From the IMG/VR virus record IMGVR_UViG_3300031669_000001, positions 1-64,000 of that record: a stretch of DNA of 64,000 nucleotides, one strand, 5' to 3'. The notes under the pieces were generated by a model. The model did not search any database and had not been told where the DNA came from. It was given only the letters and a program-made list of their open reading frames with translations. Below are positions 898 to 53,155 of the stretch, piece by piece. How positions within the stretch are numbered: the first letter of the stretch is position 1; the number at the start of each line of letters is the position of its first letter. The translations under genes were made by a program, and so were the position numbers.

Positions 898-1470
898 ATG
901 AAGCTTAAAGAATTCTTGCTCGAATCAACTATACAGTCAGCGACAACTCACATCAGAGATAATCTCTTCGAGAGTATCGTCGATTATCTTTCTCTAGTCA
1001 TCGCGCAAATTAACAACAAAAAGCCTGATGAACTCTTCAAACCAGGTCCAAACGCGCTCGATTTAGATCATCTCGCTACAATTCTTACGGGTCTCAAGAT
1101 CGTCGCAGATCCAGATTATCGTGCAGGTATCACAAAGCGAGATGTTGGTATGAATCCTAATGATGCAAAAGAACTCTTTAACGTTCTCAATCAAGTCGAC
1201 AAGCAAGGTAAAGATCCAGAAGCAATAAAGAACGTGTTCGTCGCTCTCTGTAAGTTAGCACCTCAAGCTCTCAAGCTTCAACGTTCTGAACTCGACATAC
1301 TCAGCGCTGGAGATGAAGCGGAGCGTAAACATGAAGCTCAATCTCTTCAACAGGTTCTTACAAAGGCAACTCAACTATTCAACAAAGTTCGTGTGTCAGC
1401 CACAAGCACTCGCGGCGTTGATGTACCATCCTTGGGTACTCCCGGTCACACATCCATTAGCACCAGCTAA
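898..1470 (+). CDS. Late protein, candidate internal head protein
   Basis: Late promoter and SD; N-terminus MKLKEFLLE-S resembles T4 capsid-targeting sequence. Confidence 0.65.
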   Translation: MKLKEFLLESTIQSATTHIRDNLFESIVDYLSLVIAQINNKKPDELFKPGPNALDLDHLATILTGLKIVADPDYRAGITKRDVGMNPNDAKELFNVLNQVDKQGKDPEAIKNVFVALCKLAPQALKLQRSELDILSAGDEAERKHEAQSLQQVLTKATQLFNKVRVSATSTRGVDVPSLGTPGHTSISTS

Positions 1471-2274
1471 CACTCCATTATCCGAATCATCAATCCTCAT
1501 CTTTTCACGAAGATGAGGATGTTTCAAAGCTATCAAGTGCCTTAATTCTTTATCTTCAGTCAGACCGGGATAATTTGCTTGCCGCAGGATCTGATCTTCA
1601 TCTCCCGATCTTATGAACATAATCATGGCGAGAACTTGATCTAGAACCGGTGTGCTTTCCATGATCACACAAAGCTTAGACACAAACAAGTTTTCTTTGG
1701 TGTACAGCTCAAGCTTATAAGGAGTACTGTAACCTGGGTATTGTGTTCTTTGAATGATAGATTGATCCTTCGTAAGCACAAACTTAAAGTCGCTTTCAGG
1801 GTGATAAACTTCTACTCCTGATCCTCCCAAGAAGCACCTAATCTCATCATTGAATCCTAAGCCCGTAATGAGCTTGAGACCTTTCTTTATGGCAGACCTT
1901 ATAGGTCTTGGATTCGGTCTCAATAACTTTCCAGCGACTTTTATGTTGTTAGCTTCAGCGTATAATCTCGCCTCATTCCAATTGTTCATCGTCCAAGTTG
2001 CACATGTTGTAGCCGTATCCCAGCCAGTGCCAGTCCAACTATGAATTGGAGAAGAACTTGTCAAGAATGAGAGGTAAATGTCATTCATGATGTCCTGTCC
2101 TGTCCTAGTAATAGACACAACATTGGTTGTTGAAGTTGCGATAACCCCATTGCTAATCGCTGATACGGTCCCCGACGGTCTAATGTTATTCACAAGGAAC
2201 ACAGTAGAATTAGTATCAATCACATTTGTAGGAACGTTGTGATTGTGAGTCGGAGATTCTGTTGGGGCTGCCAT
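1396..2274 (-). CDS. Hypothetical protein; partner of the GG-terminated protein
   Basis: 292 aa; TAATG overlap with upstream gene; low-complexity T/N/S N-terminus; C-terminal LCV...TP..DQ..A...AN segment. Confidence 0.7.
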   Translation of the reverse strand: MAAPTESPTHNHNVPTNVIDTNSTVFLVNNIRPSGTVSAISNGVIATSTTNVVSITRTGQDIMNDIYLSFLTSSSPIHSWTGTGWDTATTCATWTMNNWNEARLYAEANNIKVAGKLLRPNPRPIRSAIKKGLKLITGLGFNDEIRCFLGGSGVEVYHPESDFKFVLTKDQSIIQRTQYPGYSTPYKLELYTKENLFVSKLCVIMESTPVLDQVLAMIMFIRSGDEDQILRQANYPGLTEDKELRHLIALKHPHLREKMRIDDSDNGVLAGANGCVTGSTQGWYINAASACG

Positions 2275-2687
2275 TAGCCGCCGGCTATCTTACGAACTGC
2301 GACAGCCTTTGAGTTTGCAACCTTTGTCGGGTCACGCTCGATGACTGGATCAGCTTTTGATCCTTTGCCGAAGAGATTTGGACGGGCGAAACTTGCATTG
2401 CCGCTGCGAACCTGCTCTGCCACATCGCGATCATCAACAGACTTTACCATACGCTCGAATGCATCATCGTCGATGACAACATGTTCACACTTGTCGAGAG
2501 TCTCTTCCGTAACTTTAACCTTGCGGTAAAGCTTAACGATTGGAATCTTCTTTGTGGTGAAGAATGTGTAGCCTTCAGACATCTTCTTCTTGATCATCTC
2601 TATGATCTTGTCTTTGTTGTGTTCATCCCAGGTGATCGTGATGTCGCCTGAACCGTTCAGAAATGTGATGCTTGGTTGTTCGTTCAT
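2274..2687 (-). CDS. Hypothetical protein ending in di-glycine (possible ubiquitin-like)
   Basis: 137 aa, C-terminus AVAVRKIAGG-stop. Confidence 0.7.
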   Translation of the reverse strand: MNEQPSITFLNGSGDITITWDEHNKDKIIEMIKKKMSEGYTFFTTKKIPIVKLYRKVKVTEETLDKCEHVVIDDDAFERMVKSVDDRDVAEQVRSGNASFARPNLFGKGSKADPVIERDPTKVANSKAVAVRKIAGG

Positions 2688-2688
2688 T

Positions 2689-2919
2689 TTAGCTCCAGTA
2701 AATTTTACATTGAATTGAGGTGACAGATTTAAGCATCTCTGTCATTCTGTAACCATCACTTCCAAGGCGTCCAAGAATATCCTTAGCTTCAGACATCTCT
2801 ACAATGATGTATGCCTCGTATTCGCCTTTTTGAGCTGCAGCTTTAATTACCGATATCACATCAATATACCCCGGTAAATTAGCATCACGTGCGATCTTAT
2901 ATGCTTCACTTGCTAGCAT
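2689..2919 (-). CDS. Hypothetical protein
   Basis: ORF tightly packed in minus-strand operon. Confidence 0.6.
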   Translation of the reverse strand: MLASEAYKIARDANLPGYIDVISVIKAAAQKGEYEAYIIVEMSEAKDILGRLGSDGYRMTEMLKSVTSIQCKIYWS

Positions 2920-3293
2920 TTATTTTCTCCTAAGATTGTTGCGATGAAAGGCGCAGAATCTTTTACGGTCATGTACCTTGCATACGCTCCATTTGCATTC
3001 TCGATTGCCTGCTCCATAGCTTCTTGTGGAGAATTAGCCTTAAGAGTCATCGTTTTACTCTGCGTGATGATCCTAAAAACATTAACCTCATATTCTTGAG
3101 GTGCAAATGGGTCGGTAGAAACTTTTGCTATGCACCCACATTCGAATCTTGGACTGTTGTGATCATCACACCAATCACATCCCAAATGCGAAATTTGGCC
3201 GGCTCCCTTACAGTTACAGCGCTCAAGATCGTCGTTCTCTGGAGCGCGACCTGTTGCTTCCTCGAATATTTTGGCAGTGATTCTTTTAGACAT
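2913..3293 (-). CDS. Hypothetical protein with Cys/His cluster
   Basis: CNC...H.GC.WC..H...RFECGC; overlapping operon junctions. Confidence 0.6.
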   Translation of the reverse strand: MSKRITAKIFEEATGRAPENDDLERCNCKGAGQISHLGCDWCDDHNSPRFECGCIAKVSTDPFAPQEYEVNVFRIITQSKTMTLKANSPQEAMEQAIENANGAYARYMTVKDSAPFIATILGENKC

Positions 3294-3834
3294 CTTTCTT
3301 ATCCCAGTTGTAATTTTCTCTGATTGCTATCTCGTTTGGACGACCGTCGTCGAATGAGTTATTGATCCACCAGAAGGCATGGTAAATCTGCTTGTTGTAA
3401 CGATAGCGTTTCTCCACCGCGTGGAAAGATGCTTCATTGTAAAATGGTTTCTTATCCTTTAAGATCTGCCACAAATCCCACCAGGCTTGCCTGTCATCAC
3501 GTGATTGCGGAAGTTCAACAGTGTGCCATTCGCCCATAATCTTTCGGAGCATCTCTACATCAGTCGTCTTCTTTCCACGAGCAGATATCAAAGACCATCC
3601 TGCATCTTGATAATGTTCTTTTGGTGAACCATCGAAATACTTTGGTACCCAACCGGTCAAGTTTGCGAAGGTTGCAACTAATCTACTGGTGGCTAAGTTG
3701 AGACCTTTTGAGGCGTCAGCAGCCCCTTCATTAGTAGAAAATTCACCCGAGTTTCCTTCTCCTTGAACCTCTCCAGTAGCATCAGCGTAATCCTCTATCG
3801 CATTCCACAACTTTTCTGCATCAGACTTTTTCAT
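3286..3834 (-). CDS. Hypothetical protein
   Basis: 182 aa, operon packing. Confidence 0.6.
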   Translation of the reverse strand: MKKSDAEKLWNAIEDYADATGEVQGEGNSGEFSTNEGAADASKGLNLATSRLVATFANLTGWVPKYFDGSPKEHYQDAGWSLISARGKKTTDVEMLRKIMGEWHTVELPQSRDDRQAWWDLWQILKDKKPFYNEASFHAVEKRYRYNKQIYHAFWWINNSFDDGRPNEIAIRENYNWDKKDV

Positions 3835-4174
3835 GTTCGGCGCACCATTGACATTCTTGCATCTCTTGTTCTTGTTGCGGAACAGGATTACCGCAACACT
3901 CTCCAGAAAGTGTAGGACGATTGCAGCAGACAGCGATTGTCCTAACAGAAACTATCGCTCCACTTCCATCGCAATGAGGACATGCAGTCAGCAAATTGTA
4001 ATAGACGTACCACTTTGCATCTGCGACCTTACGGAGTTCTTCCCACTTAGGCCATGGCTTTTCAAGTGGTGGGTTGAAGCCGCCTTTCTTAGACAGATAT
4101 GTTGACGCTTCTACAACGGCAGCATCGTTGGCTGCCAACCATTCATCTTTAGCTTTCTGAAGTGTTTCGCTCAT
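3821..4174 (-). CDS. Hypothetical protein with Zn-finger-like Cys motifs
   Basis: CPHC.G.G, CC...CC, CQWC. Confidence 0.6.
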   Translation of the reverse strand: MSETLQKAKDEWLAANDAAVVEASTYLSKKGGFNPPLEKPWPKWEELRKVADAKWYVYYNLLTACPHCDGSGAIVSVRTIAVCCNRPTLSGECCGNPVPQQEQEMQECQWCAEHEKV

Positions 4175-4458
4175 CTTACAACTTCCTTTTCACGTTCCTT
4201 TGCCGGAGCAATTTCAGGATCGATTCGTTGCAAAGTTTCGAGAAGAAAACCTTCTCTTTTACCATCTGGTGCAAAATCTTTCCACGCAAGTGCTTCATCA
4301 AATGTAGCGTGACAACGTCTACAGTAACCTTCCCAACCGTCTGTGAACTTGGAGATTTCAACTATCGTGAAAATCAGGCCGATGCTGTTAGTGTTACCAC
4401 AGCAAGGGTCAGGATAAACAACGATGACTCTATCTCCAACTTGTAACAGCCTAGTCAT
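4171..4458 (-). CDS. Hypothetical protein
   Basis: ATGA overlap, operon packing. Confidence 0.6.
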   Translation of the reverse strand: MTRLLQVGDRVIVVYPDPCCGNTNSIGLIFTIVEISKFTDGWEGYCRRCHATFDEALAWKDFAPDGKREGFLLETLQRIDPEIAPAKEREKEVVR

Positions 4459-5142
4459 TTAAACCTTTAACAGGTTTGGGATGACAGCTCTGCTCATCCA
4501 ATGTTCATCTGTTTGGACGTGTCCCTTGCGAACCCACTTTGCAACCTTCTTGTCAAAGTCGTCAAAGCGAATTTCATCGACTATGCGAACGACGAAACCC
4601 TCTTGCGTGTGTGGATCCAACTCATCAGCCAGATCGTAGAGCACTTGAAGATTAAAGACGCCTCTGTAAAATTCTTCAGGCTGAACGATGCCTAACCTGT
4701 CAAACCAATCCGTCTGAGCGTCGACGCTGAGAGCTACGTTGCGATCATCCCAAATGGAGAAGCCGTAGAAGTAGCTCTTCAAGTCGGTGTAGGGAATTGA
4801 GTGTTGCGCGTACATGTTCTCGCCGCAAATTCTCCAACCATCAGGGATCATGTAGCTCATGTTTCCATGAAAACGTTTGATCCAGTCTCGAGATGGGTGG
4901 TGACGAGAATCCAAGCTGCGCGCGTGGAAGCCGTGATGATAGAGAGTAGTGTTTTCTCCATCCATCTTTTCAGTGACGATGACTTCCTTGCCGATCAGGC
5001 CTACAAGGCTCTCGATCAGGCGGTCATCATTCTGCAGCCCAGGGCTGAATGGAAGATGCATCGTGCGTGGGTATTTGACTTTCATTGCAACTCCTTGTAG
5101 ACGCTGATAGGATATGAATTTGGTACTTCCTTGTACCCACAA
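4459..5142 (-). CDS. RNA ligase family nucleotidyltransferase (likely start 5085)
   Basis: KYPRTMHLPFSPG, motif I EKMDGEN, ICGEN, YGFSIWD, EGFVVR, AKWVR. Confidence 0.85.
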   Translation of the reverse strand: MWVQGSTKFISYQRLQGVAMKVKYPRTMHLPFSPGLQNDDRLIESLVGLIGKEVIVTEKMDGENTTLYHHGFHARSLDSRHHPSRDWIKRFHGNMSYMIPDGWRICGENMYAQHSIPYTDLKSYFYGFSIWDDRNVALSVDAQTDWFDRLGIVQPEEFYRGVFNLQVLYDLADELDPHTQEGFVVRIVDEIRFDDFDKKVAKWVRKGHVQTDEHWMSRAVIPNLLKV

Positions 5143-5423
5143 TTCAACAACCTCAAATGCAATCTAGCATTCAAAATGCTCTCGACAAATACAGCTTCCA
5201 TATCTGCAGCTTTTGCATCAATCTCGGTTTGCGCAAGCCATGCAGTAAATAAGCCGCGTCCACGCTTCTTCTCATCAACATTTATGTTGGCTACATCAAA
5301 GCACTTCTTCACAGTGTCACCGATGCGATGCGCACCACGTCGAACATATATGCTCATGTCGTCATCATGCAACCAGGAATTTCTGAGTCCACTAGCCAAA
5401 AATTCCACAGCAGAAGTGCTCAT
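5082..5423 (-). CDS. GNAT-like acetyltransferase
   Basis: INVDEKKRGRGLFT resembles the acetyl-CoA binding R-x-x-G-x-G motif. Confidence 0.55.
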   Translation of the reverse strand: MSTSAVEFLASGLRNSWLHDDDMSIYVRRGAHRIGDTVKKCFDVANINVDEKKRGRGLFTAWLAQTEIDAKAADMEAVFVESILNARLHLRLLNCGYKEVPNSYPISVYKELQ

Positions 5424-5725
5424 GACTTTTTTGGTATGCGTGAAACGCGGTATCCCTGTCTTGCCGCATATTGCTTCAGCAAGCTAAGCTCAGGTGTCTC
5501 ATCATTCCAGTGCGTCGATGCTACTCGCTGATCAAGTCCACTACCACCACCAAAGGTTCGAAGAGTAACGTTGTCGTTGTGCACCTGTTCAACAACTTGA
5601 CCTAGACCGCATTGGATTCTTCCAGCAGACACTATCGCGTCATAAAGTGCATCTGCTTTTTTGAGAAAGTCTTCACGACCACATATTGCATCATTTTGAA
5701 ATACAAACACTGTACGAAATCCCAT
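5420..5725 (-). CDS. Early hypothetical protein
   Basis: GGAG SD; first gene after early promoter. Confidence 0.65.
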   Translation of the reverse strand: MGFRTVFVFQNDAICGREDFLKKADALYDAIVSAGRIQCGLGQVVEQVHNDNVTLRTFGGGSGLDQRVASTHWNDETPELSLLKQYAARQGYRVSRIPKKS

Positions 5726-5751
5726 GCTGTTCTCCTATGGTTGATGGAGTA

Positions 5752-5780
5752 ATTATAACACATCGGGCAGAAAAGTACAC
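5752..5780 (-). promoter_or_regulatory. T4-early-like promoter
   Basis: GTGTAC-17-TATAAT with TGTG extension. Confidence 0.8.
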
Positions 5781-5790
5781 ACTTTATATT

Positions 5791-6051
5791 TTAAACAAAC
5801 AGCTTCAATTGTTCAGAAAAACGATATGTTTCTGTCACAATCATTAAGTCGGCAGCTTTTGGAATACTAAAGTGTTTCCCTATTGGCAACCCAAAATGCT
5901 TAGTCCAAATGTCTCCGATGGCTTGATAGAGTTCTGGGTACTCGCTACGGAGAACAGACCCACCATCTGCAGGAATGTATTTCAAGTCTCTGGGAAAGTA
6001 AAGTGCAAACTCCTTTGGAAATAGGATTCCAGCCACTGGAAGAAACATCAT
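5791..6051 (-). CDS. Small protein with phage tail-collar-like motif
   Basis: YIPADGGSVLRSEYPELYQAIG resembles the collar-domain consensus. Confidence 0.5.
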   Translation of the reverse strand: MMFLPVAGILFPKEFALYFPRDLKYIPADGGSVLRSEYPELYQAIGDIWTKHFGLPIGKHFSIPKAADLMIVTETYRFSEQLKLFV

Positions 6052-6365
6052 AGCTTTCTAGCCAACTTTTCAGAGGCTTCAACAGCCTTCGCGTGAGAGC
6101 TGTATATTTTCTTGTAAAGATCTTCTGGCGCAAATCCAGGTGCAGCTTCTCCAGTCGAGTGGAAAAGCTCAGCTAACTGATGATGGATGGTGCACAGCGT
6201 GATGCCGTTTTCCTTAACGTATCCACCGTTAGGCATCTCATTTCGATCAGTGATGTGATGAGCGTCAAGGTCTGTTGTGATGTTACAGAAGCGACACTTG
6301 TGGCCGTCTCGCTTGAACACCGCGATCCTGAATGCATCTCTAACTGCTTTCTTCTTGCTACTCAT
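6048..6365 (-). CDS. HNH endonuclease
   Basis: VFKRDGHKCRFC...AHHI...NGITLCTIHH. Confidence 0.85.
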   Translation of the reverse strand: MSSKKKAVRDAFRIAVFKRDGHKCRFCNITTDLDAHHITDRNEMPNGGYVKENGITLCTIHHQLAELFHSTGEAAPGFAPEDLYKKIYSSHAKAVEASEKLARKL

Positions 6366-6511
6366 CTTCTACTTTCCTATAAATTCCGTCTTTCAAAGTT
6401 ATAACACCGTCATAGATTAAATCTGTAAGAGCTTTATGCAAATCAATGCTCAGAAATTGATCGTAGATCAATCCACTTTTATCAAGTTCATCTAAGACCA
6501 TTTGCCTATAT

Positions 6512-8192: not shown

Positions 8193-8235
8193 TTGTCTGC
8201 AAGAGGCACAGCCAAAATATTCTTTCGTTCTTCGC

Positions 8236-13122: not shown

Positions 13123-13266
13123 TTATTTGTTGCAACCTTGAGAAGTAGCAGCGGTGCCGACTTTACCATGCCCAGTAAGAACGGGGATAGTTACAGCGGC
13201 AATGATTCCGATGATTGCAATGACGATCATCAGTTCTGTCAAGGTAAAACCTTTAGTTGCTTTCAT
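13123..13266 (-). CDS. Mini type IV pilin-like peptide 1 (47 aa; not in ORF track)
   Basis: GGAG SD; MKATKG/FTLTELMIVIAIIGIIAAVTIPVLTGHGKVGTAATSQGCNK; prepilin cleavage site, E5, G14, P22. Confidence 0.85.
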   Translation of the reverse strand: MKATKGFTLTELMIVIAIIGIIAAVTIPVLTGHGKVGTAATSQGCNK

Positions 13267-13324: not shown

Positions 13325-13465
13325 CTAGAACTTCAAGTGTTGTGTTTGATTCATTGGGATGATCTTGTCATGTTTCAAAAACGGAGTGACGAGAGCGGTG
13401 ATGATGATCAGAATTGCGACAACGATCAACATCTCGATTACTGTAAAGCCTTTGTTTGCTTTCAT
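13325..13465 (-). CDS. Mini type IV pilin-like peptide 2 (46 aa; not in ORF track)
   Basis: AAGGAG SD; MKANKG/FTVIEMLIVVAILIIITALVTPFLKHDKIIPMNQTQHLKF; E5, P22. Confidence 0.85.
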   Translation of the reverse strand: MKANKGFTVIEMLIVVAILIIITALVTPFLKHDKIIPMNQTQHLKF

Positions 13466-22794: not shown

Positions 22795-23211
22795 ATGGCT
22801 AAAGTACATCCAATAATTTTCGAAGAACTTCAAGATGACAAAAATCTTCTTTTCTTGACGCTGATCGAGTACAAGAAGGTCAAGTACCTCACCATCGTCG
22901 AAAACATCATCGACACAGAGATTCAAGCTTACATCCTTGACAACCTAGCTGCAGAAGGTATCGATCAAGATTGGTTCTTGAGCGTGGCTACTAAGTGGTT
23001 CTATGCTGCTTCTGACAGATACCCACTTTCTTTTGAGTTTGCGAAACTTGGCAACGGTGACGTTGTTAGGAAGTCTCTCAAGACTTTCAACATCAACTCT
23101 ACATCTCGAATCATTGGGAAGTTGTTCACCTACGACATCAACAGCAAGCCAAAGATCAAGCGTAGGAAGGTAGTTGCGATGCCTGAAAACGCTGAGATCA
23201 AATTCAAATAG
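22795..23211 (+). CDS. Hypothetical protein
   Basis: Plus-strand two-gene island preceded by AATAAATA (22756-22763). Confidence 0.75.
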   Translation: MAKVHPIIFEELQDDKNLLFLTLIEYKKVKYLTIVENIIDTEIQAYILDNLAAEGIDQDWFLSVATKWFYAASDRYPLSFEFAKLGNGDVVRKSLKTFNINSTSRIIGKLFTYDINSKPKIKRRKVVAMPENAEIKFK

Positions 23212-33106: not shown

Positions 33107-33410
33107 TTACAGGAAACACCATGTGAGCGCGGATGCTGACAGTATCTGCATCTGCATAATCCAGCGAAGGAGCATCTTCATGTGGTTCACCGTACAGGAA
33201 CTTCTTGATTGACTCTACACTCAAAGTTACTCGACCGGTCTTTGTGATCTTGATCGCAGTTCCTACTGTAGTGCGAGCCCAGCCACCGTCAGAAGTGCTG
33301 TAACCATATCGTTGTCCTATTGCAATTGGAATTCCAAGAGCATCTTTCCACACCTTTGGAAAGTCAATTGGATTGTCTGTATTTGTCATGTGTACCATGA
33401 TAATCCTCAA
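33093..33410 (-). CDS. Hypothetical protein
   Basis: Operon packing. Confidence 0.6.
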   Translation of the reverse strand: MRIIMVHMTNTDNPIDFPKVWKDALGIPIAIGQRYGYSTSDGGWARTTVGTAIKITKTGRVTLSVESIKKFLYGEPHEDAPSLDYADADTVSIRAHMVFPVNEPS

Positions 33411-33625
33411 AGTAAGGTGATGCGATTCTTTGGAAATAAAACCACAGAGATGATTGGGAAGTCCACCTTCTCATCCCATGCAACTGACTCTCCATTGATG
33501 ATGAGAGCTTTGTTCTGACACCATCTCTTCAGCTCCGAGTTTGAGACAGGACCAACGCGCTTGCCTTCTCTCGTTTGAAAGTGACAAACTTTATTGAGGT
33601 CTCGTAGAAATTCCCAGAAGTTCAT
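33407..33625 (-). CDS. Hypothetical protein
   Basis: ATGA overlaps. Confidence 0.6.
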   Translation of the reverse strand: MNFWEFLRDLNKVCHFQTREGKRVGPVSNSELKRWCQNKALIINGESVAWDEKVDFPIISVVLFPKNRITLL

Positions 33626-39003: not shown

Positions 39004-39467
39004 GATGTTACTTCCTTCTTCAATAGTTTAAGTTCATCTTTTTGGAGCCCGTGAGCCTCACCTAGTTCCATGATTTCATCTGCTGAGAACAATCTGACTG
39101 TGTCTTCTGCTTCCTTTAGAGACATGTGATAGTGTTCTGCTATCAACTCCACAGATTTCTTACTCTTCTTTGTTCCACCTGTCTTGTAGTTAATCCAAGT
39201 GTAGCGCTTCTTATCTCCAGATGAACACACTGTCAACAGCTTCAAGAATAGTTCCTTGTGTTCTGGTAAACTGAAGACCGCTAGGTTGACAACCTCATTC
39301 AAGAAGATTATCTGTCTTTGATCAGTAGTTCCAGCCATCCACCTCATGGTAACAAGTGGGGAAAACTCTTTCTTCTGATCATCGCTAAGCGAATCCCATA
39401 GCTTGTAGTTCTTCTTGTCAATTTCACCTAACAGCATGAAAATGTCAAGAGCTCTTTCTTTAACCAT
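39000..39467 (-). CDS. Clamp loader small subunit (T4 gp62-like)
   Basis: K..FSP....RWM...LNE.VN...HKEL pattern; adjacent to gp44-like gene. Confidence 0.6.
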   Translation of the reverse strand: MVKERALDIFMLLGEIDKKNYKLWDSLSDDQKKEFSPLVTMRWMAGTTDQRQIIFLNEVVNLAVFSLPEHKELFLKLLTVCSSGDKKRYTWINYKTGGTKKSKKSVELIAEHYHMSLKEAEDTVRLFSADEIMELGEAHGLQKDELKLLKKEVTS

Positions 39468-39651
39468 CTATCTTGCACCTAACTTTTGCTACGCGAATAT
39501 CTCTGTGTAGATTCTCGATTCGTTCGAGCAGCTCAAGCTCACGAGACCTTGGAACCATCTCTATGTCGTCTGAGTGTTCACCGTTGGTCAACACATATTC
39601 ACCTTGTACTTCACGCACAAATATTTTATTCTTCATCATCATCATCGTCAT
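39460..39651 (-). CDS. Hypothetical protein
   Basis: Operon packing. Confidence 0.5.
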   Translation of the reverse strand: MTMMMMKNKIFVREVQGEYVLTNGEHSDDIEMVPRSRELELLERIENLHRDIRVAKVRCKIDG

Positions 39652-42801: not shown

Positions 42802-43029
42802 CTATTCCTGATAATAATCTTTGATCTCTTTAGTAGTCATAGGCTTTTTAGAGAAAACTATACCATGAGTATCTGAACCTTTTGTCATCGGTAAGTCATA
42901 CACAAAAAGTCCTAACTTCTTTAGAATTTTCTTCAGCTCTTTTGCAGTTTCATCGCTCAAATCCCGATGATCAGCCAAGAGCAATTGATGAGTAACTACT
43001 TCTTCTATCAAAAATGATTTGAATAGCAT
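42802..43029 (-). CDS. Small protein with capsid-targeting-like N-terminus
   Basis: MLFKSFLIE-E. Confidence 0.6.
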   Translation of the reverse strand: MLFKSFLIEEVVTHQLLLADHRDLSDETAKELKKILKKLGLFVYDLPMTKGSDTHGIVFSKKPMTTKEIKDYYQE

Positions 43030-43030
43030 T

Positions 43031-43414
43031 TTATTTTTTTCCATAATGAGATGATCCGCCAATGCGAACGCCTAGAAACAGACCCATAGCTTTCCAGTGT
43101 GGAGTACCGGTTGCAATTGCAGCTTCTCTCAACACACAATCACACTTGTAGCGAGAAAATGGTGCTGTTGAATAGACGTAATCGTGCAGCGTTGCAGCTT
43201 CTGATGCGATGTCACCAAAGATGGAGAAAAATAGCGCGGGCCATCTTGGCACAGATGCGAAGTCTGTGACGTAACCAACAGGAACTGTAAGAGTACCAAC
43301 TCCCGTGATATCAGATTTATAAACGAGAGGCGCTGTCAACGACCATGTGCCACGACCTTGTGCTGCGCTTTGATCTACGAGTTCAACTTCTAACTTTGAT
43401 TGGAATGATGCCAT
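43031..43414 (-). CDS. DUF1353-family protein
   Basis: VPVGYVTDFASVP...AATLHDY.Y...CD..L.EA; GGAGG SD at 43414. Confidence 0.8.
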   Translation of the reverse strand: MASFQSKLEVELVDQSAAQGRGTWSLTAPLVYKSDITGVGTLTVPVGYVTDFASVPRWPALFFSIFGDIASEAATLHDYVYSTAPFSRYKCDCVLREAAIATGTPHWKAMGLFLGVRIGGSSHYGKK

Positions 43415-43424: not shown

Positions 43425-44060
43425 TTAGATGTGTGCAAGCTTTTTAAGAGCTGCAAGTTTTCTGTCATATTTACTAGCCCATGACGTGACGCTTTTGATA
43501 ACCTTTTTGATAGCAGAAACTATTCCAGCTTTCAAGTCACCAATCAAACCTTCGTTCACTTTAGCTTTGACAGATAAAGCTGGAGACTTGTCTTCCTGCT
43601 TGGTGATCGTAGTGTAAGCTGCGGCGATCTCATCAACCTTCGCTTGAAGCTCGTCTGGGATCAGCTTTGCGAGTTCTTCAGCGATGGCTTTGTAGTCAAC
43701 GACAATCTTATCATCTTGCTTTGACTTTTTGGAAACCGTGAGAGTGAATGAAACGGTGTCTATCACTCGCGTAAGCACTATGTCCTCAGCGGCGAAGAGG
43801 TCTTCAACCTTCTCCTTGATGTCTGCGTTCAATTCTTTCTTCTTCTCACCCATAACCTTGATGGCTTTATCAAGACGATCGTAACGAGCTGCAAGCTTGG
43901 TCAACACGCCTGATTCATTGCCGTTGAGTTCGACGATGACGCGATCAAGCTGTTTCTTAACGAGTTTTTCTGTGTAAGTTAGATCTTCACGGCGCTTACG
44001 ATTTTCATCAGCTTCAGTGAGAATCAGGTGTTCTTTAAGGGTTAAATTATTGGGTGTCAT
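43425..44060 (-). CDS. Coiled-coil protein, candidate processed head/core protein
   Basis: LKEHLILTE-A and VNE-G motifs; helical. Confidence 0.65.
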   Translation of the reverse strand: MTPNNLTLKEHLILTEADENRKRREDLTYTEKLVKKQLDRVIVELNGNESGVLTKLAARYDRLDKAIKVMGEKKKELNADIKEKVEDLFAAEDIVLTRVIDTVSFTLTVSKKSKQDDKIVVDYKAIAEELAKLIPDELQAKVDEIAAAYTTITKQEDKSPALSVKAKVNEGLIGDLKAGIVSAIKKVIKSVTSWASKYDRKLAALKKLAHI

Positions 44061-44878: not shown

Positions 44879-45439
44879 CTATAATTTTATGAAGTCTGTG
44901 ATCTCGATGTCGTACTCGACGGGATCGACTTCATGTAGACCGAGAAGATACAGTAAGTAGCTTGAACATGAACTTCCACGTCCTACTCCCCAGATGACTT
45001 TCTTTTCCTTCATCACGTCTATCACGTAGATGAGAGTTCTTAGAACATCGTCTAGCTTAAGCTGCTTGAACATCCAGATTTCTGTAGAGAGGCGTTCAAC
45101 ACGTTTCTCATAGAGATCATCTTTCTCAATCCGATCGACCAACCCAATGAGGTAATCTTCGAGATTCAGATCATATTTATAGCGATCGGGCAGCTTCCAT
45201 TCTGGAGGGAACTTAACGTTGCATTCTGTCTTAATCTTCAGCTCATGGTCGCTGATTGAGTTATAGGCGAGGATTTCAGGAGTGATTGATGTGACATATA
45301 ACTTCTCGATACCGTGCGTCTCAGATGACATCCTGAGTATGTACGAGACGATTGAATCAGGGTCTACAGAAATTGTACCATCTGGCCAGAGCAGATGGTC
45401 TTCAACTACTATCGGAAGGAGCTCACTTGAGGGCTTCAT
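44879..45439 (-). CDS. dnaE: DnaE-like polymerase N-terminal fragment
   Basis: WGVGRGSSCSSYLLYLLGLHEVDPVEYDI matches DnaE GPGRGS.AGS..AY.L.IT..DP..YDL. Confidence 0.8.
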   Translation of the reverse strand: MKPSSELLPIVVEDHLLWPDGTISVDPDSIVSYILRMSSETHGIEKLYVTSITPEILAYNSISDHELKIKTECNVKFPPEWKLPDRYKYDLNLEDYLIGLVDRIEKDDLYEKRVERLSTEIWMFKQLKLDDVLRTLIYVIDVMKEKKVIWGVGRGSSCSSYLLYLLGLHEVDPVEYDIEITDFIKL

Positions 45440-46505
45440 CGACGAGTCTCTTTAACCAGCCAAGGTCAGCTACAACGTCAGTTTGAGGTGGATTGAGCAT
45501 GTCCCATTGTTGGATCTGTTGTAGTGCAGTGCGAAGCTTCATAACTTCAGAAGATTCACCCTTTCTGAATTTTGTAACTGCTTCCACAAATTCTTTATCC
45601 GTCTTTGCTTTTAGACGGGTGCGTGGCAACTTGTCTGCTAATTCTAAGATGAGTGGAAGCTTTGCAAGCTTCATTCTCCACTCAAGTGGAATTCCATCTT
45701 CGCCGTAAAATGCTCCTGCAACTTGACCGCAAATAGCAGCTGTGGTGTCTGCATCATCACCGAGATTAGCAGCCTTTAGGATCGCATCTCGAAAATTGTC
45801 TGTCGTGTAGAAACACCAAAGAGCAGCTTCAAGGCTTTGAATAACGTAACCAGATCCCACGATCTCTTTTTCTGACTTGTCGACATAGGTTCCATCTGCA
45901 ATGTCTTGAATGCTCTTTGACATAAAGCTGTCATGTTGACAGAATAGAATTTCTTCTTTGTTCAAATAGTCAGAGTGTAGAGCGTTGAAGATGATAGCTC
46001 CTAACAACTTACAAGCTTCAATGCACTGAGGTGCAGAGTGAGTAGTCCTAGAGCTCAACCCTGAATTGAACACCGCTAAAGTTCTATTGTCATGAAAGAA
46101 CATTGGAACAGGTGCGAGACGCATGATGCTACCATTGCCTAGAGAGTAATCATCGTGCCACGCAACTTCTGAACCGATTTCTTGAAAGTCTCTAAGAGCT
46201 CTCCGAGTAGTTCCACCAATGTCAAAGCAGTGACCGTTGCTGCTCATGTAACCGAGATTGAGCCAATCCACATACTTTTGAAGCTGATCGACAGCATCCA
46301 TTCCACCTTTGTCTACCAAGCTCTGAGCTAAACAGAGAGCCATCGAGGTGTCATCTGTCCATTGACCAGGCTCGAGGTTAAATGCACCACCGCCTACCAT
46401 GTCAGTGACAGGTTCAAATTCACCTCGAGTCTGAAACTCAACAGTTGTACCTACTGCATCGCCGCATGCAAGTCCTAACAACGCACCTCGAAATTTATCG
46501 TTCAT
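45423..46505 (-). CDS. ADP-ribosylglycohydrolase (DraG/ARH family)
   Basis: LGLACGDAVG, GQWTDDT, GNGSIMR, TTH, GDDADTT. Confidence 0.92.
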   Translation of the reverse strand: MNDKFRGALLGLACGDAVGTTVEFQTRGEFEPVTDMVGGGAFNLEPGQWTDDTSMALCLAQSLVDKGGMDAVDQLQKYVDWLNLGYMSSNGHCFDIGGTTRRALRDFQEIGSEVAWHDDYSLGNGSIMRLAPVPMFFHDNRTLAVFNSGLSSRTTHSAPQCIEACKLLGAIIFNALHSDYLNKEEILFCQHDSFMSKSIQDIADGTYVDKSEKEIVGSGYVIQSLEAALWCFYTTDNFRDAILKAANLGDDADTTAAICGQVAGAFYGEDGIPLEWRMKLAKLPLILELADKLPRTRLKAKTDKEFVEAVTKFRKGESSEVMKLRTALQQIQQWDMLNPPQTDVVADLGWLKRLVDEALK

Positions 46506-46611
46506 TCTTTTGCCTTTATTATGTACAGATAGCACAGCCCTAAAGCTACAGCGATAACAGAACCGCCTAAAGCTCCACTTAGAGCAGCAACTGTCATATC
46601 TTCAAATGTTA

Positions 46612-47984: not shown

Positions 47985-48040
47985 TTTACTCTCTTCTTCA
48001 AATGAGAAGATTGTATCACATGCAGAAGATCGTGTAAATT

Positions 48041-48364
48041 TTATAGTAAGTGGAGTTCGTCGTCGATTCGGCTGTCCAAGACAGTGTCTTCAATCTTGTA
48101 ACGCCAGACTTTGAAGCCTTTCTGTTTCAACTGACGAACAACTTCGACAGTGCGATTTGTGATGTCCTCGAGTTCCTTCGAGTGACTCGTCATGAAGGTA
48201 TCTTTAGAAGAACGTTCTTCTGTGTCTGCTTCACGCTTCTTCATGAGCAGGTCTGCAATCCTGAACTTCCAACCTTCAGCGATCAGCTTTGCGGTCTCTA
48301 GCTTACCGTCAAAAACAGGTTCGATGGTGACGTGAGCTTCGTAGTAGTGTTTGGCAGTTGTCAT
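48041..48364 (-). CDS. Hypothetical protein
   Basis: YYEAHVT...RYKIEDTVLDSR. Confidence 0.7.
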   Translation of the reverse strand: MTTAKHYYEAHVTIEPVFDGKLETAKLIAEGWKFRIADLLMKKREADTEERSSKDTFMTSHSKELEDITNRTVEVVRQLKQKGFKVWRYKIEDTVLDSRIDDELHLL

Positions 48365-48672
48365 ATCACAGAAAGGCAGTAATTCTTCTCATTCTCGATC
48401 AACTTGGCAACTGTCACACACGTAATATTAACCGCCGACTGAATGTAGTCTGTCTCATCGTTCTTAGGTTTAATCAGGCCCTGTGATTTCGCGATACACT
48501 CGTTGTAAGCTTCAAGCTTTGCGAGCTTGATCAGGTTAACGAGTTCGCGGTCACCCACTTGATACTTGCTGCCTGATTCAAAAGAATCTTCTATGCTAAT
48601 TCCAGCCTGAATGCGCAGCTTGTCAATACCTTCCATAGTAATCATTTTCTTCCACCTCTCCTTTTTTCCCAC
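48361..48672 (-). CDS. Hypothetical protein
   Basis: Operon packing. Confidence 0.55.
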   Translation of the reverse strand: MGKKERWKKMITMEGIDKLRIQAGISIEDSFESGSKYQVGDRELVNLIKLAKLEAYNECIAKSQGLIKPKNDETDYIQSAVNITCVTVAKLIENEKNYCLSVI

Positions 48673-48875
48673 TCATAGTCAGAATTCGGCGCAGCTACAC
48701 CATCAAGGTGAGTAGCATCTGGATTTTCAGATGACATCGCGATGAAACTTATGCTCCTTCCAGCTATCCGATCTTGTCTCAGCTTCTCGCACAGCTTTAG
48801 AGCTTTATCAATTTCCTCAAAGCTTTCGAAATTTGATAAATCCCCCTCCGTCCAGTATATGCGATGAACGGTCAC
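48642..48875 (-). CDS. Hypothetical protein
   Basis: Operon packing. Confidence 0.55.
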   Translation of the reverse strand: MTVHRIYWTEGDLSNFESFEEIDKALKLCEKLRQDRIAGRSISFIAMSSENPDATHLDGVAAPNSDYEWEKRRGGRK

Positions 48876-48986
48876 GGTAAAACTGCTCCTATGGTAAAGA
48901 GAATTCCAAATACCAAGAATCCTGCTGCAGTTGAATGTACCAAAAATCCAATTGCAGTTCCAATGACAATTATTCCTACGAGATAA

Positions 48987-49307
48987 TCAGCTGATCCCAT
49001 TTTTTGCTCCTAATATTTTGTTCAGCGTCACAGAAAAGATAGATTTTGGTTTACGAGCTGCACGAGCCTTGCGTATTTCCTTGTACAGCGTGTAGCTATA
49101 ATCAGCCATCTTCTTTTCAAACCAAGGCTTCTGCGTTATAGCGTATCGATAAGCTCTGTCACCATAAACATCGCGAGCGCCGTAGCTCGGCCACTCACAC
49201 TTAGGACAACCGCCATGTTTGCTGGCATCTTTCTTCTCAAAGATCCACTCGCATGACATGCAGACCCGCAAGTTTGCTCGTTGTTGAGGGCTGAGTTTCT
49301 GTTTCAT
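48987..49307 (-). CDS. Zn-ribbon protein
   Basis: CMSC...GGCPKC. Confidence 0.65.
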   Translation of the reverse strand: MKQKLSPQQRANLRVCMSCEWIFEKKDASKHGGCPKCEWPSYGARDVYGDRAYRYAITQKPWFEKKMADYSYTLYKEIRKARAARKPKSIFSVTLNKILGAKNGIS

Positions 49308-49645
49308 ACAAAGACCTTAGCTATAGCTGCCCAAGCATCCTTCTTGGAATTTTGCCATTCGATGTGTTGAGTGATGCTGTTCGTTTCCAGGTAAATCATG
49401 TACTTTCCAGAATGATTTGAATAAACACAGTGGGCTTCTGGATACTTGCTCTTTACCTTCTCTTCATTGGACATTTCAAACTCCTTACCTTCGGTAAACA
49501 ATCTTCCTCTATCAACTGCACAGGTTTTATGAGCTGGGTAGATACCGTCTAGCCTCACAAAATCTTTATCTTTGACAACAAATCTGCACAGTCTGCACCG
49601 AGGCTTCGGCTTAATGACGTTTGGATTCCAGTTACCGCGTGCCAT
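49304..49645 (-). CDS. Hypothetical protein with Zn-finger-like motif
   Basis: CRLC...H..C. Confidence 0.55.
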   Translation of the reverse strand: MARGNWNPNVIKPKPRCRLCRFVVKDKDFVRLDGIYPAHKTCAVDRGRLFTEGKEFEMSNEEKVKSKYPEAHCVYSNHSGKYMIYLETNSITQHIEWQNSKKDAWAAIAKVFV

Positions 49646-49871
49646 TTAAGTACAACTTCAATCCAGCTTCCAAAATTTCTATCTTATTGCGATGTTTCAT
49701 GATCTCTTTATTGATCTTATCGACACCGCATTCACGAGCAAGCTGGGCAGCATTTGCAATCTTTTCTTCTAGAGTTAAGATTCCAGAAGGATTTGTTTCT
49801 TGAAGCTTTGGAGCTTTCAAGTCTTTCTTATTCATTTGCTTTTTAATCGTGTGCATAGTAAGTTGCATCAT
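49632..49871 (-). CDS. Hypothetical protein
   Basis: Operon packing. Confidence 0.5.
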   Translation of the reverse strand: MMQLTMHTIKKQMNKKDLKAPKLQETNPSGILTLEEKIANAAQLARECGVDKINKEIMKHRNKIEILEAGLKLYLNGTR

Positions 49872-50893
49872 TCTTTCTCCGTCAGAGCGTAGACTGCAAG
49901 CTTCTTCCAGTCTTTGCAGCTTGAGTTGCGGATTGTGATCAAGTTCATCAGCGAGCGGAAGTTGATGTCGTCAGTCACGTTCATGTGCTCTTCCAGCAGG
50001 TTAAGAGCTTCATGCTTGTGTTCAAGCTCGACGTGCGGAAGAACATCTTCAATCACGTTGCGCATACGTTCGATGCGTTGTGGCTTGGACATCGACAGGT
50101 CAACCTTGAAGCAGCGAGTCTTCACGGCTTCATCGATCTTAGCGAGCTTCATGTTCGAGATGAAGATGATGCGGCCGTTAAACTTGAAGGTCATCGGCAA
50201 ATCTGCATCGCCGAAAGATTGTTCGACTAACCAAGACACCCAACGTTCTTCGTAGGAGTCCAACGCCGATTTCAGCAAGCTGATCGAATCAGCGTCTTTC
50301 AGAACCTTGTCGCAATCATCGAAAACGATAGTGCGATCACGATTTTCCCAAAGCAGACGGTAGAGAGCTTTGGAAGATGCGTGGCCTTTGATGACAACGT
50401 AGTCACCTTTAGGCTGATTGATTTGTGCGTAGACCTTGTCTTTGATCTTTTCTTCTGAATCTTCTACCTGGATGACGTTAAGATCATCGATGCTTGGGAA
50501 GATCGTGTTGCAGTTAACCTTACCGGCCTTGCGCAGCGATTCCATCACGGTGAAGGTCTTACCGACTCCACCTTCGCCGCTAACCATCAGAGATTTAGCA
50601 TCACCTTCAACCACCAGGGTGATCAACTCGTTGAGAAACTCAAAGCGTTCGTTGATGTCGAAGTTAGAATCGACTGAAGATATCGCAACGCCCTTAGGAT
50701 CAGTGATCTTGATGTTGGTTGTAACAACCTCAACGTCCGTGATCTTCGCCTTCACGACGTGAGGGTGAGATTGTTTAGCGACGTAGCGAACTAACGTCTC
50801 CGAGCTTTTTGATGCTACGATAACTTTGTTGCGGGAGATAAGTTGAAACTTGTTCTTTGTTTCATTCCAAACTATCTTAGCTTTTGACATCAT
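49868..50893 (-). CDS. Early AAA+ ATPase
   Basis: Walker A GEGGVGKT, Walker B IVFDDCD, IFISN sensor, KTRC. Confidence 0.85.
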   Translation of the reverse strand: MMSKAKIVWNETKNKFQLISRNKVIVASKSSETLVRYVAKQSHPHVVKAKITDVEVVTTNIKITDPKGVAISSVDSNFDINERFEFLNELITLVVEGDAKSLMVSGEGGVGKTFTVMESLRKAGKVNCNTIFPSIDDLNVIQVEDSEEKIKDKVYAQINQPKGDYVVIKGHASSKALYRLLWENRDRTIVFDDCDKVLKDADSISLLKSALDSYEERWVSWLVEQSFGDADLPMTFKFNGRIIFISNMKLAKIDEAVKTRCFKVDLSMSKPQRIERMRNVIEDVLPHVELEHKHEALNLLEEHMNVTDDINFRSLMNLITIRNSSCKDWKKLAVYALTEKE

Positions 50894-50922
50894 TACCTCT
50901 CTCTGTTTAGATTTGATGGTGT

Positions 50923-50951
50923 ATTATATCACAAGCAGCTGAAAAGTAAAC
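50923..50951 (-). promoter_or_regulatory. T4-early-like promoter
   Basis: GTTTAC-17-TATAAT. Confidence 0.8.
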
Positions 50952-50971
50952 ACTTTTGTGCGGAAAAGACT

Positions 50972-51004
50972 GAAGCCCGATTGAATTTCTTCAAATCGGG
51001 CTTC
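50972..51004 (-). terminator. Intrinsic terminator
   Basis: GAAGCCCGATT...AATCGGGCTTC stem followed by AGTCTTTT on minus. Confidence 0.7.
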
Positions 51005-51035
51005 GGATGCTCCTTCTACACGTGGCAGATGAGTC

Positions 51036-51212
51036 TTATTTTAGAAGTTTTGCAGCTTCATCTAACATATTGATTGCATTACGCAGGCTATCTGGAGCGT
51101 CAGGACCCATAACCCTTTGAATTTCGCCAAGCTCTTTCATTGCCTTGGAAATAATCTTTACGCCTGCTGGAACAGATCGTTCTTCTTTCAGGTATTGCTT
51201 AAAGTCACTCAT
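51036..51212 (-). CDS. Small protein with capsid-targeting-like N-terminus (58 aa; not in ORF track)
   Basis: MSDFKQYLKE-ERSVPAG...AAKLLK; ATGA overlap. Confidence 0.65.
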   Translation of the reverse strand: MSDFKQYLKEERSVPAGVKIISKAMKELGEIQRVMGPDAPDSLRNAINMLDEAAKLLK

Positions 51213-51391
51213 TTCTTCTTTCGCTCGTAAACTACAGCGCGCCTGTCACCATAGATGTACCTTTGATCCTTCTGACCATTTTGAAGGATAACAGTTTCAA
51301 CGTCAATCAAATCGTGTCCGTCGTAACAGATGCCAAATACAACCTCTTCGTCATCAGCGCAGTGTGCTTCTACGGTTACTGTAGTCGTCAT
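51209..51391 (-). CDS. Hypothetical protein
   Basis: Operon packing. Confidence 0.55.
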   Translation of the reverse strand: MTTTVTVEAHCADDEEVVFGICYDGHDLIDVETVILQNGQKDQRYIYGDRRAVVYERKKK

Positions 51392-51392
51392 C

Positions 51393-52478
51393 TTAGTTCT
51401 CCTGCATCGCTTTTCTAGCGACTGCGATTATTTGTTTCTTTTCTGCTTCATTTGGATTTCCAGGATTAGCAACAATTTCTACCTTTCCATTCTTCTTGAA
51501 GACTACCGAAAAGTGACCATACTTTTCACCACGTGAATCAGTGACTTCACACATGTCCGTCTCCATGCTACCAGCCCAATACTTGGCTTCACACAATTGA
51601 GATTCTGTCAGCTTTTCCTTGAACTCACCGCTCATCTTTTTGATGTCAGCTTTACGATCACGCATTGAAACTTCTTCAAGGCGCTTCACTACATTTTCTA
51701 TGAGATTTTCTAGGCGTTCATCCAACTCATCTTCAGTGAATTCGAATGGAGTATCTTCATCATCTTTATGAGTGCGTTCATACTTGACCTTGTCGTCGAC
51801 AAGATAGACGTAAGCCATTCGGATTAAGGTAGGCATCAACGCATTGACAACGTCATGAGAATCTGCACGATCAGGATCTAGCTTGATCACGTCAACGTCT
51901 GGAAAAACATCTGCTTCCATGACGAGAGATTCATTAACAAGTTCTTTAAAATCTACTTCTTTTTCATCGCTCATTCTATAGGTTGCAGCAGCGATATACT
52001 TTCCAGCTTTGGCTTTAGATAAAGCATCGCGAGTGATCCTTGGATGATTCACATCAATGATTGTCTTCATTCCTACAGGCTTAAAATCTTTTTGAGTCTC
52101 ACGTCTCTTGAGATCTGCAGCATCTAACCCGTAAGTTATGTATTTGAAACCTACTGATTCTTCAAGAGGTTCAAATGCATCTTGATCAAGCTTTACACCT
52201 CTAAATCCACGAGCATCGAAAATTTTCACATCTTCAATCTTATTATTTCCACGAATCGCGCAATCAAATTCTATGATGCCTTTACCATGTGCAGAATTAG
52301 TTTCCCAATTAAAAGCTACCATGTACCCTTCTTTTCCATGTGTACGAGATACTGGGTTATCGAGTTCAATAGTGGCAGTATTTTCGATGCCTAAACGCTT
52401 TGCAAATACATTTTCCAGATCATTGATCTGGTCTGCTGTGAAGTGTGTTTCTTCTTTTAGAAATTGTGAGAATTTCAT
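51393..52478 (-). CDS. Candidate multi-module internal head polyprotein
   Basis: MKFSQFLKE-E; linkers LEE-S, VNE-SLVME-A, LTE-SQLCE-A. Confidence 0.7.
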   Translation of the reverse strand: MKFSQFLKEETHFTADQINDLENVFAKRLGIENTATIELDNPVSRTHGKEGYMVAFNWETNSAHGKGIIEFDCAIRGNNKIEDVKIFDARGFRGVKLDQDAFEPLEESVGFKYITYGLDAADLKRRETQKDFKPVGMKTIIDVNHPRITRDALSKAKAGKYIAAATYRMSDEKEVDFKELVNESLVMEADVFPDVDVIKLDPDRADSHDVVNALMPTLIRMAYVYLVDDKVKYERTHKDDEDTPFEFTEDELDERLENLIENVVKRLEEVSMRDRKADIKKMSGEFKEKLTESQLCEAKYWAGSMETDMCEVTDSRGEKYGHFSVVFKKNGKVEIVANPGNPNEAEKKQIIAVARKAMQEN

Positions 52479-53155
52479 GATCTGCTTTCTAATTCTTTTT
52501 CAAGATTTGGATCTATCTTCTTCACGAGAACATCAATCTCGTCTTGGGTCGGGGTGTCACGGTTGATACCTACTAACTTTCTCGCTGCATAACCTGTAGG
52601 ATGATTTGCAGAATCTGCAAAGAAGTCAACGATGACGTTGCTGACTTCTTCGATTGTTATTTCTAGCTCATCTTCTATCTCAGCTAGATCTTCTGCTTTA
52701 TTGAAAGCTTCAAGACACTTATCAAATTGTGGAGTCCAAAACTGATCTGTAGTGCGAGCGAGTTCTGCGGCGTAGGTGAAGTGCATGCCGTGATTTAGCT
52801 CTTTAAGCTTCTTCAACACGTAATCGTAGATCTTTTGTTGCATGACACCAAAGTTGATGCCTTCGAGGATGAGAGATTCTTTGACAGGTTTGTTTGCGAG
52901 CATTGACTTTAGCTCGGCTTTGATCTTCTTGGCAACTTCACCTTTCCAAGTAGAAGCATTTGAGAGGAAGTAGAGAACTACCCCCTTGCCATCATCTGCA
53001 TGATAATTGTCTGTAAGCTTATCAAGGTCTGCCATCGCATCGAGATAAGGCTTTGCGTAAGGACTTATATTTTTCCAGTCCTTACGAATATCGTTCGCAA
53101 TCGCCGACAGTGAACGATAATTCGCTGGCGCTTCTAACAGATCTCTAATTTTCAT
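52475..53155 (-). CDS. Candidate two-module internal head protein
   Basis: MKIRDLLE-A; internal VKE-SLILE-G. Confidence 0.7.
   Translation of the reverse strand: MKIRDLLEAPANYRSLSAIANDIRKDWKNISPYAKPYLDAMADLDKLTDNYHADDGKGVVLYFLSNASTWKGEVAKKIKAELKSMLANKPVKESLILEGINFGVMQQKIYDYVLKKLKELNHGMHFTYAAELARTTDQFWTPQFDKCLEAFNKAEDLAEIEDELEITIEEVSNVIVDFFADSANHPTGYAARKLVGINRDTPTQDEIDVLVKKIDPNLEKELESRS

Follow-up and report, generated by a model that had tools for sequence, protein, structure and literature searches.

Do the short, similar N-termini of several genes scattered between positions 898 and 53155 of IMG/VR virus record IMGVR_UViG_3300031669_000001 mark their products for packaging into the phage head? 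The stretch analysed (the window, 64,000 nucleotides) comprises bases 1-64000 of this record, which is 345,069 bp long, with 42.8% G+C and direct terminal repeats. An earlier note on the window had listed six such N-termini and likened them to the start of the T4 internal proteins IPII and IPIII, MKTYQEFIAE, which was found as given in the T4 record (MKTYQEFIAE/A; here and below, a slash follows the Glu of the motif). On translation, five of the six (at 898, 43029, 51212, 52478, and 53155) were present exactly where they had been placed, each as a short leader ending hydrophobic-x-Glu with the Glu at residue 8-10 (Table 1). The sixth, at 44060, was not borne out as a leader N-terminus: the open reading frame (ORF) begins MTPNNLTLKEHLILTE/A and its L-x-E ends at residue 16, which makes no N-terminal decapeptide, yet lies within the 10-20-residue range given for T4 propeptides (PMC5694885). 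We consider it likely, with a probability of about 0.7, that the leaders are clade variants of the T4 capsid-targeting sequence, which would be bound by the scaffolding core and cut after Glu by the prohead protease, the mature protein being kept in the head.

Genes were called across the whole genome with a crude, home-made procedure, which gave 508 calls totalling 99,731 residues. The leaders follow the consensus M-x(1-3)-F-K-x-[FY]-L-x-E or a looser sister form of it, MK-[ILV]-x-[DEQ]-[LI]-[LF]-E. The pattern [KSQ].[FY][LIV].E occurs 27 times in the gene set, and 6-8 of these occurrences end at protein residue 9-10; a refined pattern, [FLY][KSRQ].[FYW][LIVF].E, has 6 N-terminal matches in this genome against 0.1 expected (Poisson P 1.6e-9). 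The leader consensus opens 6-7 non-paralogous proteins where 0.1-0.2 would be expected, and about 7 strong and about 8 looser candidates were listed genome-wide. Carriers of the specific form are four canonical genes of the window and the three outside it given in Table 1. When the candidates were compared by BLASTP with all predicted proteins of the phage, none matched another candidate; the carriers are not paralogues. The F-K-x-[FY]-L-x-E form is enriched 30-60 times at N-termini in two genomes, that of this phage and that of Ralstonia phage RsoM2USA. Less specific patterns were of little use: M-x(2,4)-[FY]-[LI]-x-E, which the earlier note had suggested for a genome-wide scan, misses MSDFKQYLKE and is merely 2-3-fold enriched, and a loose [LIV]-x-E rule was discarded as uninformative (about 10% of all proteins match, with 2-3-fold enrichment). 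The Leu, Ser, Phe, and Lys codons vary between leader copies while the residues are kept, and selection therefore acts on the leader peptide and not on the DNA.

The genome encodes a Peptidase_S77 prohead protease of the gp21 type (95 bits). It shares 37% identity with T4 gp21 and retains the GELNHP and GVS-x-RG motifs; the His and Ser of these motifs are read as the putative catalytic pair because the crystallised T4 chain 5JBL has Ala at two positions within them. A Gp23-type major capsid protein was also found (312 bits). Its closest relatives among named phages are those of RsoM2USA (57% identity) and Xanthomonas phage XacN1 (54%), then those of Xoo-sp13 and two Stenotrophomonas phages, followed by Rak2-like jumbo phages at about 39%. 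On the basis of the T4-type protease, the Gp23-type capsid protein, and this kinship, the phage is assigned from its sequence to the T4-superfamily jumbo myoviruses, XacN1/RsoM2USA group. In a four-way alignment the capsid maturation site YLTE40/TAGA aligns with T4 FLTE/AEIGG (FLTE65), the Glu40 being invariant, and the same site reads RMIAE/TA in RsoM2USA and IMLAE/TA in XacN1. From this site a protease specificity for hydrophobic-x-Glu is predicted, the cut itself being putative. The N-termini of the scaffold and the protease of this phage resemble those of T4 gp24, gp22, and gp21 (Table 1).

The genome of RsoM2USA, with genes called in the same way, served for replication. The pattern derived from the present genome alone found 9 matches there against 0.2 expected (P 1e-12), and with the refined pattern at least 12 RsoM2USA proteins start M-x(0-2)-TFK-x-[FY]-L-x-E, again against 0.2 expected. 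Abundant virion bands of RsoM2USA had been excised and assigned, from liquid chromatography with tandem mass spectrometry and predicted masses, to ORF38, 86, 89, 132, 257, 356, 359, 361, 383, and 438, among which ORF86, 89, 132, 257, and 438 were called hypothetical, unknown, or uncharacterized (PMC8504454). Three of these five unassigned band proteins carry the leader, as MKTFKQFLSE/S at the start of ORF89, as MKTFKQFLNTLME/A at the start of ORF132, and as MLTFKQYAQPILTE/G within ORF438. The homologue of ORF438 in the present phage (179645-181150) is 35% identical and begins with MKLNFKRYSSKFFLAE/G, and its gene is preceded by a late promoter box. The leader is not mentioned in the searched portions of the RsoM2USA paper (PMC8504454).

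Uncultured phages were covered by a back-translated scan of IMG/VR for MKTFKQF[LF], which returned at least 120 contigs and was weighed on features outside the search pattern, such as Glu at position 9 or 10 and Ala or Ser at position 11. Among the matches listed were 98 distinct sequences; Glu occupies position 9 or 10 in 89 of these, and position 11 is mostly Ala or Ser. Of the listed matches 82 were examined; 76 of these have no in-frame ATG upstream before the nearest stop and therefore sit at real ORF starts, where they head unrelated proteins of 17-533 residues. T4-type sheath, portal, protease, or capsid genes lie within a few kb at 40 or more of the loci. A 2.4-kb contig with a homologue of the window operon carries three consecutive leader genes (MSSFKSFLKE, MSSFKEFIQE, and MQTFKQYIRAVME). 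Neither MKTFKQFL nor MKTFKQF was found as a string in a text search of a library of papers.

In the mechanism proposed here, the short amphipathic leader would dock the nascent protein on the scaffolding core during prohead assembly, as in T4, and the Peptidase_S77 protease would cut after the leader Glu, at the kind of site where the capsid protein, the scaffold, and the protease itself are presumably cut. The trimmed cargo would remain in the head with the DNA and, by analogy, at least part of it might exit with the DNA at infection. The window cargo would then consist of the product of the lone late gene 898-1470, the ORFan 42802-43029, and the products of an 'ip-locus-like' operon at 51036-53155. 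The claim that the leader is a capsid-targeting sequence cut by a gp21-type protease gained indirect support, from the intact protease motifs, the aligned capsid L-x-E site, the conservation at peptide level, the RsoM2USA bands, and the unselected Glu. We infer capsid loading of the leader carriers with moderate-to-good confidence; the carriers are probably head-packaged and possibly injected, and an anti-defence role of the cargo is plausible by analogy with T4. The earlier picture of a simple set of IPI*-like inhibitors did not stand, as some carriers elsewhere in the genome have enzyme domains (PRTase and Zn-protease).

Several points weigh against capsid targeting. The patterns behind the P values were shaped post hoc, one of them having been replicated on a second genome, and the phage is uncultured and known here from sequence alone. 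In 3 of the 23 homologues of the 898 protein, Glu9 is replaced by Gln or Ser, with an [LI]-x-E five residues later. The RsoM2USA authors word their band assignments as 'most likely' (PMC8504454), and no window protein has a homologue in RsoM2USA, apart from 52475-53155, where part of the protein has one. In XacN1 only a single site matches the F-K-x-[FY]-x-x-E DNA pattern, which means that not all of the clade has the variant. No late promoter box lies within 60 nt of the window leader genes other than 898-1470. Finally, the starts at 43029 and 53155 hinge on a choice among in-frame ATGs. Both are internal ATGs in longer open frames, with alternative starts at 43044/43062 and at 53170, respectively. 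The ATG at 43029 sits 1 nt past the stop of an upstream DUF1353 gene, and a public gene call for the same protein begins at 43044, 5 codons earlier. For 53155, the homologues P0006 and P0007 have a canonical leader (MKTKFSQYIAE and MSSFKSFLKE) at exactly that position, preceding the same YR.L..IA..I.KDWKN domain as in 52475-53155.

An alternative that also accepts targeting to the prohead core, and that we regard as unlikely, is that most carriers are assembly or core components (cf. T4 gp67, gp68, and gp22) or head-resident enzymes, which would be degraded or retained and not injected as effectors. It is consistent with the similar N-termini of the scaffold, the protease, and the product of the gene just downstream of the protease, with the presence of such sites in T4 core proteins, and with the PRTase and Zn_protease domains on some carriers. 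The window carriers, however, sit in accessory regions, well away from the head gene cluster, and are poorly conserved ORFans without a RsoM2USA homologue, which is the same pattern as that of the T4 ip genes; moreover, T4 Ip1-3 are all injected GmrSD inhibitors (PMC12373910).

Much less probable is that the common start represents a conserved 5' end of the genes, serving DNA-level cassette shuffling or translation initiation and no sorting signal, even though the leader codons are A/T-rich (AAA, TTT, and GAA), as is common at gene starts, and T-even ip loci are recombination hot spots (PMC12373910). Against it, synonymous codons vary freely while the residues are kept, the Glu and the Ala/Ser that follow the searched string in the listed IMG/VR matches were not selected for, and carriers are among the proteins assigned to RsoM2USA virion bands. 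Chance resemblance is the least credible explanation. Hydrophobic-x-Glu near Met1 is indeed frequent in any proteome (about 10% of proteins here match a loose [LIVFM]-x-E at residues 7-11, and the motif of, for example, 22795-23211 is missing from the RsoM2USA homologue), yet for the canonical form chance is largely refuted by the enrichment in two genomes and the occurrence in at least 120 viral contigs, and it is a viable explanation for no more than the weak items, those at 44060, 39636, and 33625.

Pfam and PHROG searches with the six items of the earlier note gave a sole match, phrog_13953 (of unknown function) to the N-domain of 52475-53155, the rest being sub-threshold noise, and neither database indicated sequence similarity of the mature parts to T4 IPI, IPII, or IPIII. 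The 898-1470 protein falls in a metagenomic family of 24, with 23 homologues (53-75% identity), all of which keep the start M[KRL]L[KR]EF[LIV][ILV]ES, Glu9 excepted in three. The AlphaFold2 (AF2) model of the 898 protein is predicted to be all-alpha, with a predicted local distance difference test (pLDDT) score of 82.5, and a fold search of PDB, BFVD, AFDB clusters, and ESM Atlas with this model gave nothing above a template modelling (TM) score of 0.5 on both sides. The protein encoded at 42802-43029 has no homologue but itself in 5.8 billion proteins.

For the 361-residue protein (51393-52478), the AF2 model was poor and unusable (pLDDT 50), there was no usable Atlas match, and an IMG/VR search for relatives gave none. 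Seven metagenomic homologues were found, which have in common with it a central module of about 100 residues alone. Leader-like N-termini (MKFSRFINE, MNTFKKFLKD, MKITQILKLNE, MKTKFSQYIAE, and MSSFKSFLKE) occur in five of these, and two join the central module to the N-domain of 52475-53155, which indicates, at the level of sequence, domain shuffling behind a constant leader.

The 51036-51212 protein gave 287 phmmer matches, mostly NACHT/AAA_16 proteins with TPR_10/TPR_12 repeats, each matched 4-10 times. In phmmer and in BLASTP against repeat arrays, its residues 11-49 align with one 42-residue TPR_10 unit, including an RV[LM]GPD.PD[ST]L core; Pfam TPR_10 (PF13374) did not match it even at E <= 10, so that it falls below the gathering cut-off. 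A 63-residue homologue, P0048, keeps the leader (MSAFKKYLEE/E). The gene just downstream (49868-50893, minus strand) encodes a 341-residue P-loop protein with weak AAA_16, AAA_22, and NB-ARC matches (E 2e-4 to 6e-4). A bolder extension, which we hold to be doubtful, is that MxxFKQFLxE would be a widely used 'address label' of uncultured T4-superfamily phages that marks an ip-like operon here, and that the 48-residue single-TPR_10 product would be brought in along with the DNA and act, as a decoy or as a poison, on the TPR sensor arrays of antiphage proteins of the STAND/NLR type.

The genes at 52475-53155, 51393-52478, 51209-51391, and 51036-51212 are joined by overlapping or 1-nt-spaced stop and start codons and form one operon, in which three of the four products have a leader. 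A scan for sigma-70 promoters and terminators over 42-56 kb gave counts at background. The T4 late-promoter core ATAAATA is not over-represented overall in the genome; of the 74 copies, however, 29 are placed 20-39 nt upstream of a start codon, and because of this peak the phage probably uses T4-type late promoters. Among others, the core precedes the prohead protease gene and a 731-residue gene adjoining a sheath-like gene, and in the window it is found upstream of the starts at 898, 13025, 22795, 27093, 53222, 55168, 61025, and 62321. With the full TATAAATA box upstream of its start, 898-1470 is very probably a late gene. Among the first genes behind late boxes, leader-like starts are enriched about 3-5 times (P about 0.01-0.03).

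Table 1. Leader-bearing genes, look-alikes, and related features of the phage, with T4 counterparts (a slash follows the Glu of the motif).
Feature	N-terminus or sequence	Positions	Strand	Remarks
Leader gene	MKLKEFLLE/S	898..1470	+	190 residues; lone plus-strand gene, very probably late
Putative T4-type late promoter box	TATAAATA	862..869	+	29 nt upstream of ATG at 898
Leader gene	MLFKSFLIE/E	42802..43029	-	75-residue ORFan
Leader gene	MSDFKQYLKE/E	51036..51212	-	58 residues; leader followed by one TPR_10-like repeat
Operon member without leader	MTTTVTVE...	51209..51391	-	60 residues; tightly coupled to both neighbours
Leader gene	MKFSQFLKE/E	51393..52478	-	361 residues; start overlaps stop of preceding gene
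Leader gene	MKIRDLLE/A	52475..53155	-	226 residues; first gene of four-gene operon
Weak candidate	MTPNNLTLKEHLILTE/A	43425..44060	-	211 residues, Lys/Glu-rich; Glu at residue 16; no homologue evidence
Weak possible leader	MKNKIFVRE/V	39460..39636	-	58-residue ORF; run of Met codons in front
Look-alike	MNFWEFLRD	33407..33625	-	72-residue ORF; Asp in place of Glu; probably not a substrate
Carrier outside window	MITFKQFLSE/T	112703-113509		C-terminal PRTase domain
Carrier outside window	MFAFKTFLFE/S	147613-148521		C-terminal Zn_protease domain
Carrier outside window	MKFKNFVTE/S	252497-252694		
Prohead protease	MHGKDMILIE/E	125213-125854	-	T4 record: gp21 MNEPQLLIE/T
Gene just downstream of protease	MKVEDLLE/A			
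Scaffold	MDSILKKLLE/S			T4 record: gp22 MLKEQLIAE/A
T4 gp24	MAKINELLRE/S			T4 record

Two further candidates were set aside: 22795-23211 (MAKVHPIIFE/E, with a late promoter) was rejected, the motif being missing in its RsoM2USA homologue, and 102147-102824, which has an SLT domain and a hydrophobic Ala/Gly-rich stretch, was judged a probable chance match. A leader-bearing paralogue family in the neck/head gene region comprises 174999-175829 (minus strand) and RsoM2USA_403-405. Its members have an invariant Arg46 ([FY]-R-G), Ser126, and Glu252, recalling R-S-E ADP-ribosyltransferases such as T4 Alt, and by these residues the family might be an Alt-like ADP-ribosyltransferase; there was no Pfam match, and the Atlas search gave weak leads alone (DUF2441 and DUF3841). 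In RsoM2USA, a very large tandem array of paralogues of about 190-210 residues occupies 175-211 kb on both strands; many members start MKL.EI.E, MRFKKWLSE, or MSFKQWLKE, and the array may, judging by these starts, be a diversified head-cargo family. Near the head genes of XacN1, the starts MKQDLISMLE/A, MKIQNILSE/D, and MKSLFQELKE/A were noted, and XacN1 may use the looser leader form only.

Nearly all window genes are on the minus strand, and the recognisable ones are accessory: AAA ATPases, a VWA/metallopeptidase protein, an ADP-ribosylglycohydrolase, and a GIY-YIG endonuclease. A near-identity DNA search of 50000-56000 against a phage collection gave no match. The ADP-ribosylglycohydrolase (45423-46535, minus strand; PF03747, 257 bits) is a strong match, encoded in the accessory region not far from the genes at 43029 and 44060. 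The endonuclease gene (53222-53908, plus strand), of the SegE-like GIY-YIG/NUMOD3 homing type, is the immediate upstream neighbour of the leader operon but is encoded on the other strand. An ATAAATA box precedes its start by 18 nt, and its 3' end overlaps gene 53865-54527. Four minus-strand ORFs of about 165-200 residues without a Pfam match follow at 54590-55168, 60426-61025, 61154-61651, and 61758-62321, and three of them (54590-55168, 60426-61025, and 61758-62321) are preceded by late promoter boxes. The N-terminus of 54590-55168 is of an ILQPK type that is also seen in 98927-99523, a homologue of the RsoM2USA structural protein ORF356. A 292-residue ORF (1396-2274, minus strand) runs towards the 898 gene and shares with it the final 75 nt of that gene; the gene caller left this ORF out and reported in its place two small plus-strand ORFs that are probably spurious. 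At 13123-13266 and 13325-13465 (both minus strand), tandem ORFs of 46-47 residues start MKATKGFTLTELMIVIAI and MKANKGFTVIEMLIVVAI, N-termini that resemble type IV prepilin leader/N-methylation motifs, here in a phage genome.

With the leader, candidate first-strike proteins of unculturable phages, as in the IMG/VR contigs above, can be listed cheaply and from sequence only, and if it is indeed an address label, sequence alone could tell which proteins are loaded into the head and injected. The leader could also serve to load foreign proteins into such capsids, for which T4 provides a precedent. Because the cargo has no known fold or family, any function found for it would be new. The mechanism itself is known: the capsid-targeting sequence concept is that of Mullaney & Black 1996 (reviewed in PMC3012670 and PMC5694885), and finding ip genes by their leader was already established for T-even phages (Repoila 1994, cited in PMC12373910). 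What is new is the extension to RsoM2USA-type jumbo phages, the variant consensus, and the cargo.

The closest known system is that of T4, in which Ip1, Ip2, and Ip3 each inhibit a different GmrSD restriction enzyme and have only the leader in common (PMC12373910, PMC3012670). As with IPI, IPII, and IPIII, a leader of about 10 residues ending hydrophobic-x-Glu stands here on otherwise unrelated small proteins, a gp21-type protease is encoded in the genome, and the genes are scattered or clustered in accessory regions. T4 MKTYQEFIAE and the local MxxFKQ[FY]LxE have aromatic, aromatic, aliphatic, and Glu residues at the same spacing, whereas F-K-x-F-L takes the place of Y-Q-E-F-I, the mature parts have no sequence or fold similarity to any IP, and the carrier is a 345-kb jumbo phage of the XacN1/RsoM2USA group, known here from its genes alone, and not a Tequatrovirus. 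RsoM2USA ORF89, ORF132, and ORF438 have the same leader, and the ORF438 homologue of the present phage has a comparable one of 16 residues; the three leader genes in a row on the 2.4-kb contig mirror the window operon. The 51036-51212 product resembles the TPR_10/TPR_12 arrays of bacterial STAND (NACHT/NB-ARC) proteins in that its residues 11-49 align with a single unit of such repeats, and differs from them in having a single repeat, no NTPase domain, and a phage leader in front. The head ejection proteins of phiKZ and SPN3US are cut after Glu by the prohead protease, and their propeptide is thought to target the head (PMC5694885, PMC10052503); their propeptides are mostly longer than 100 residues and are cut at [SAG]-x-E, whereas the leaders described here are of 8-16 residues and end [LIF]-x-E, in the style of T4.

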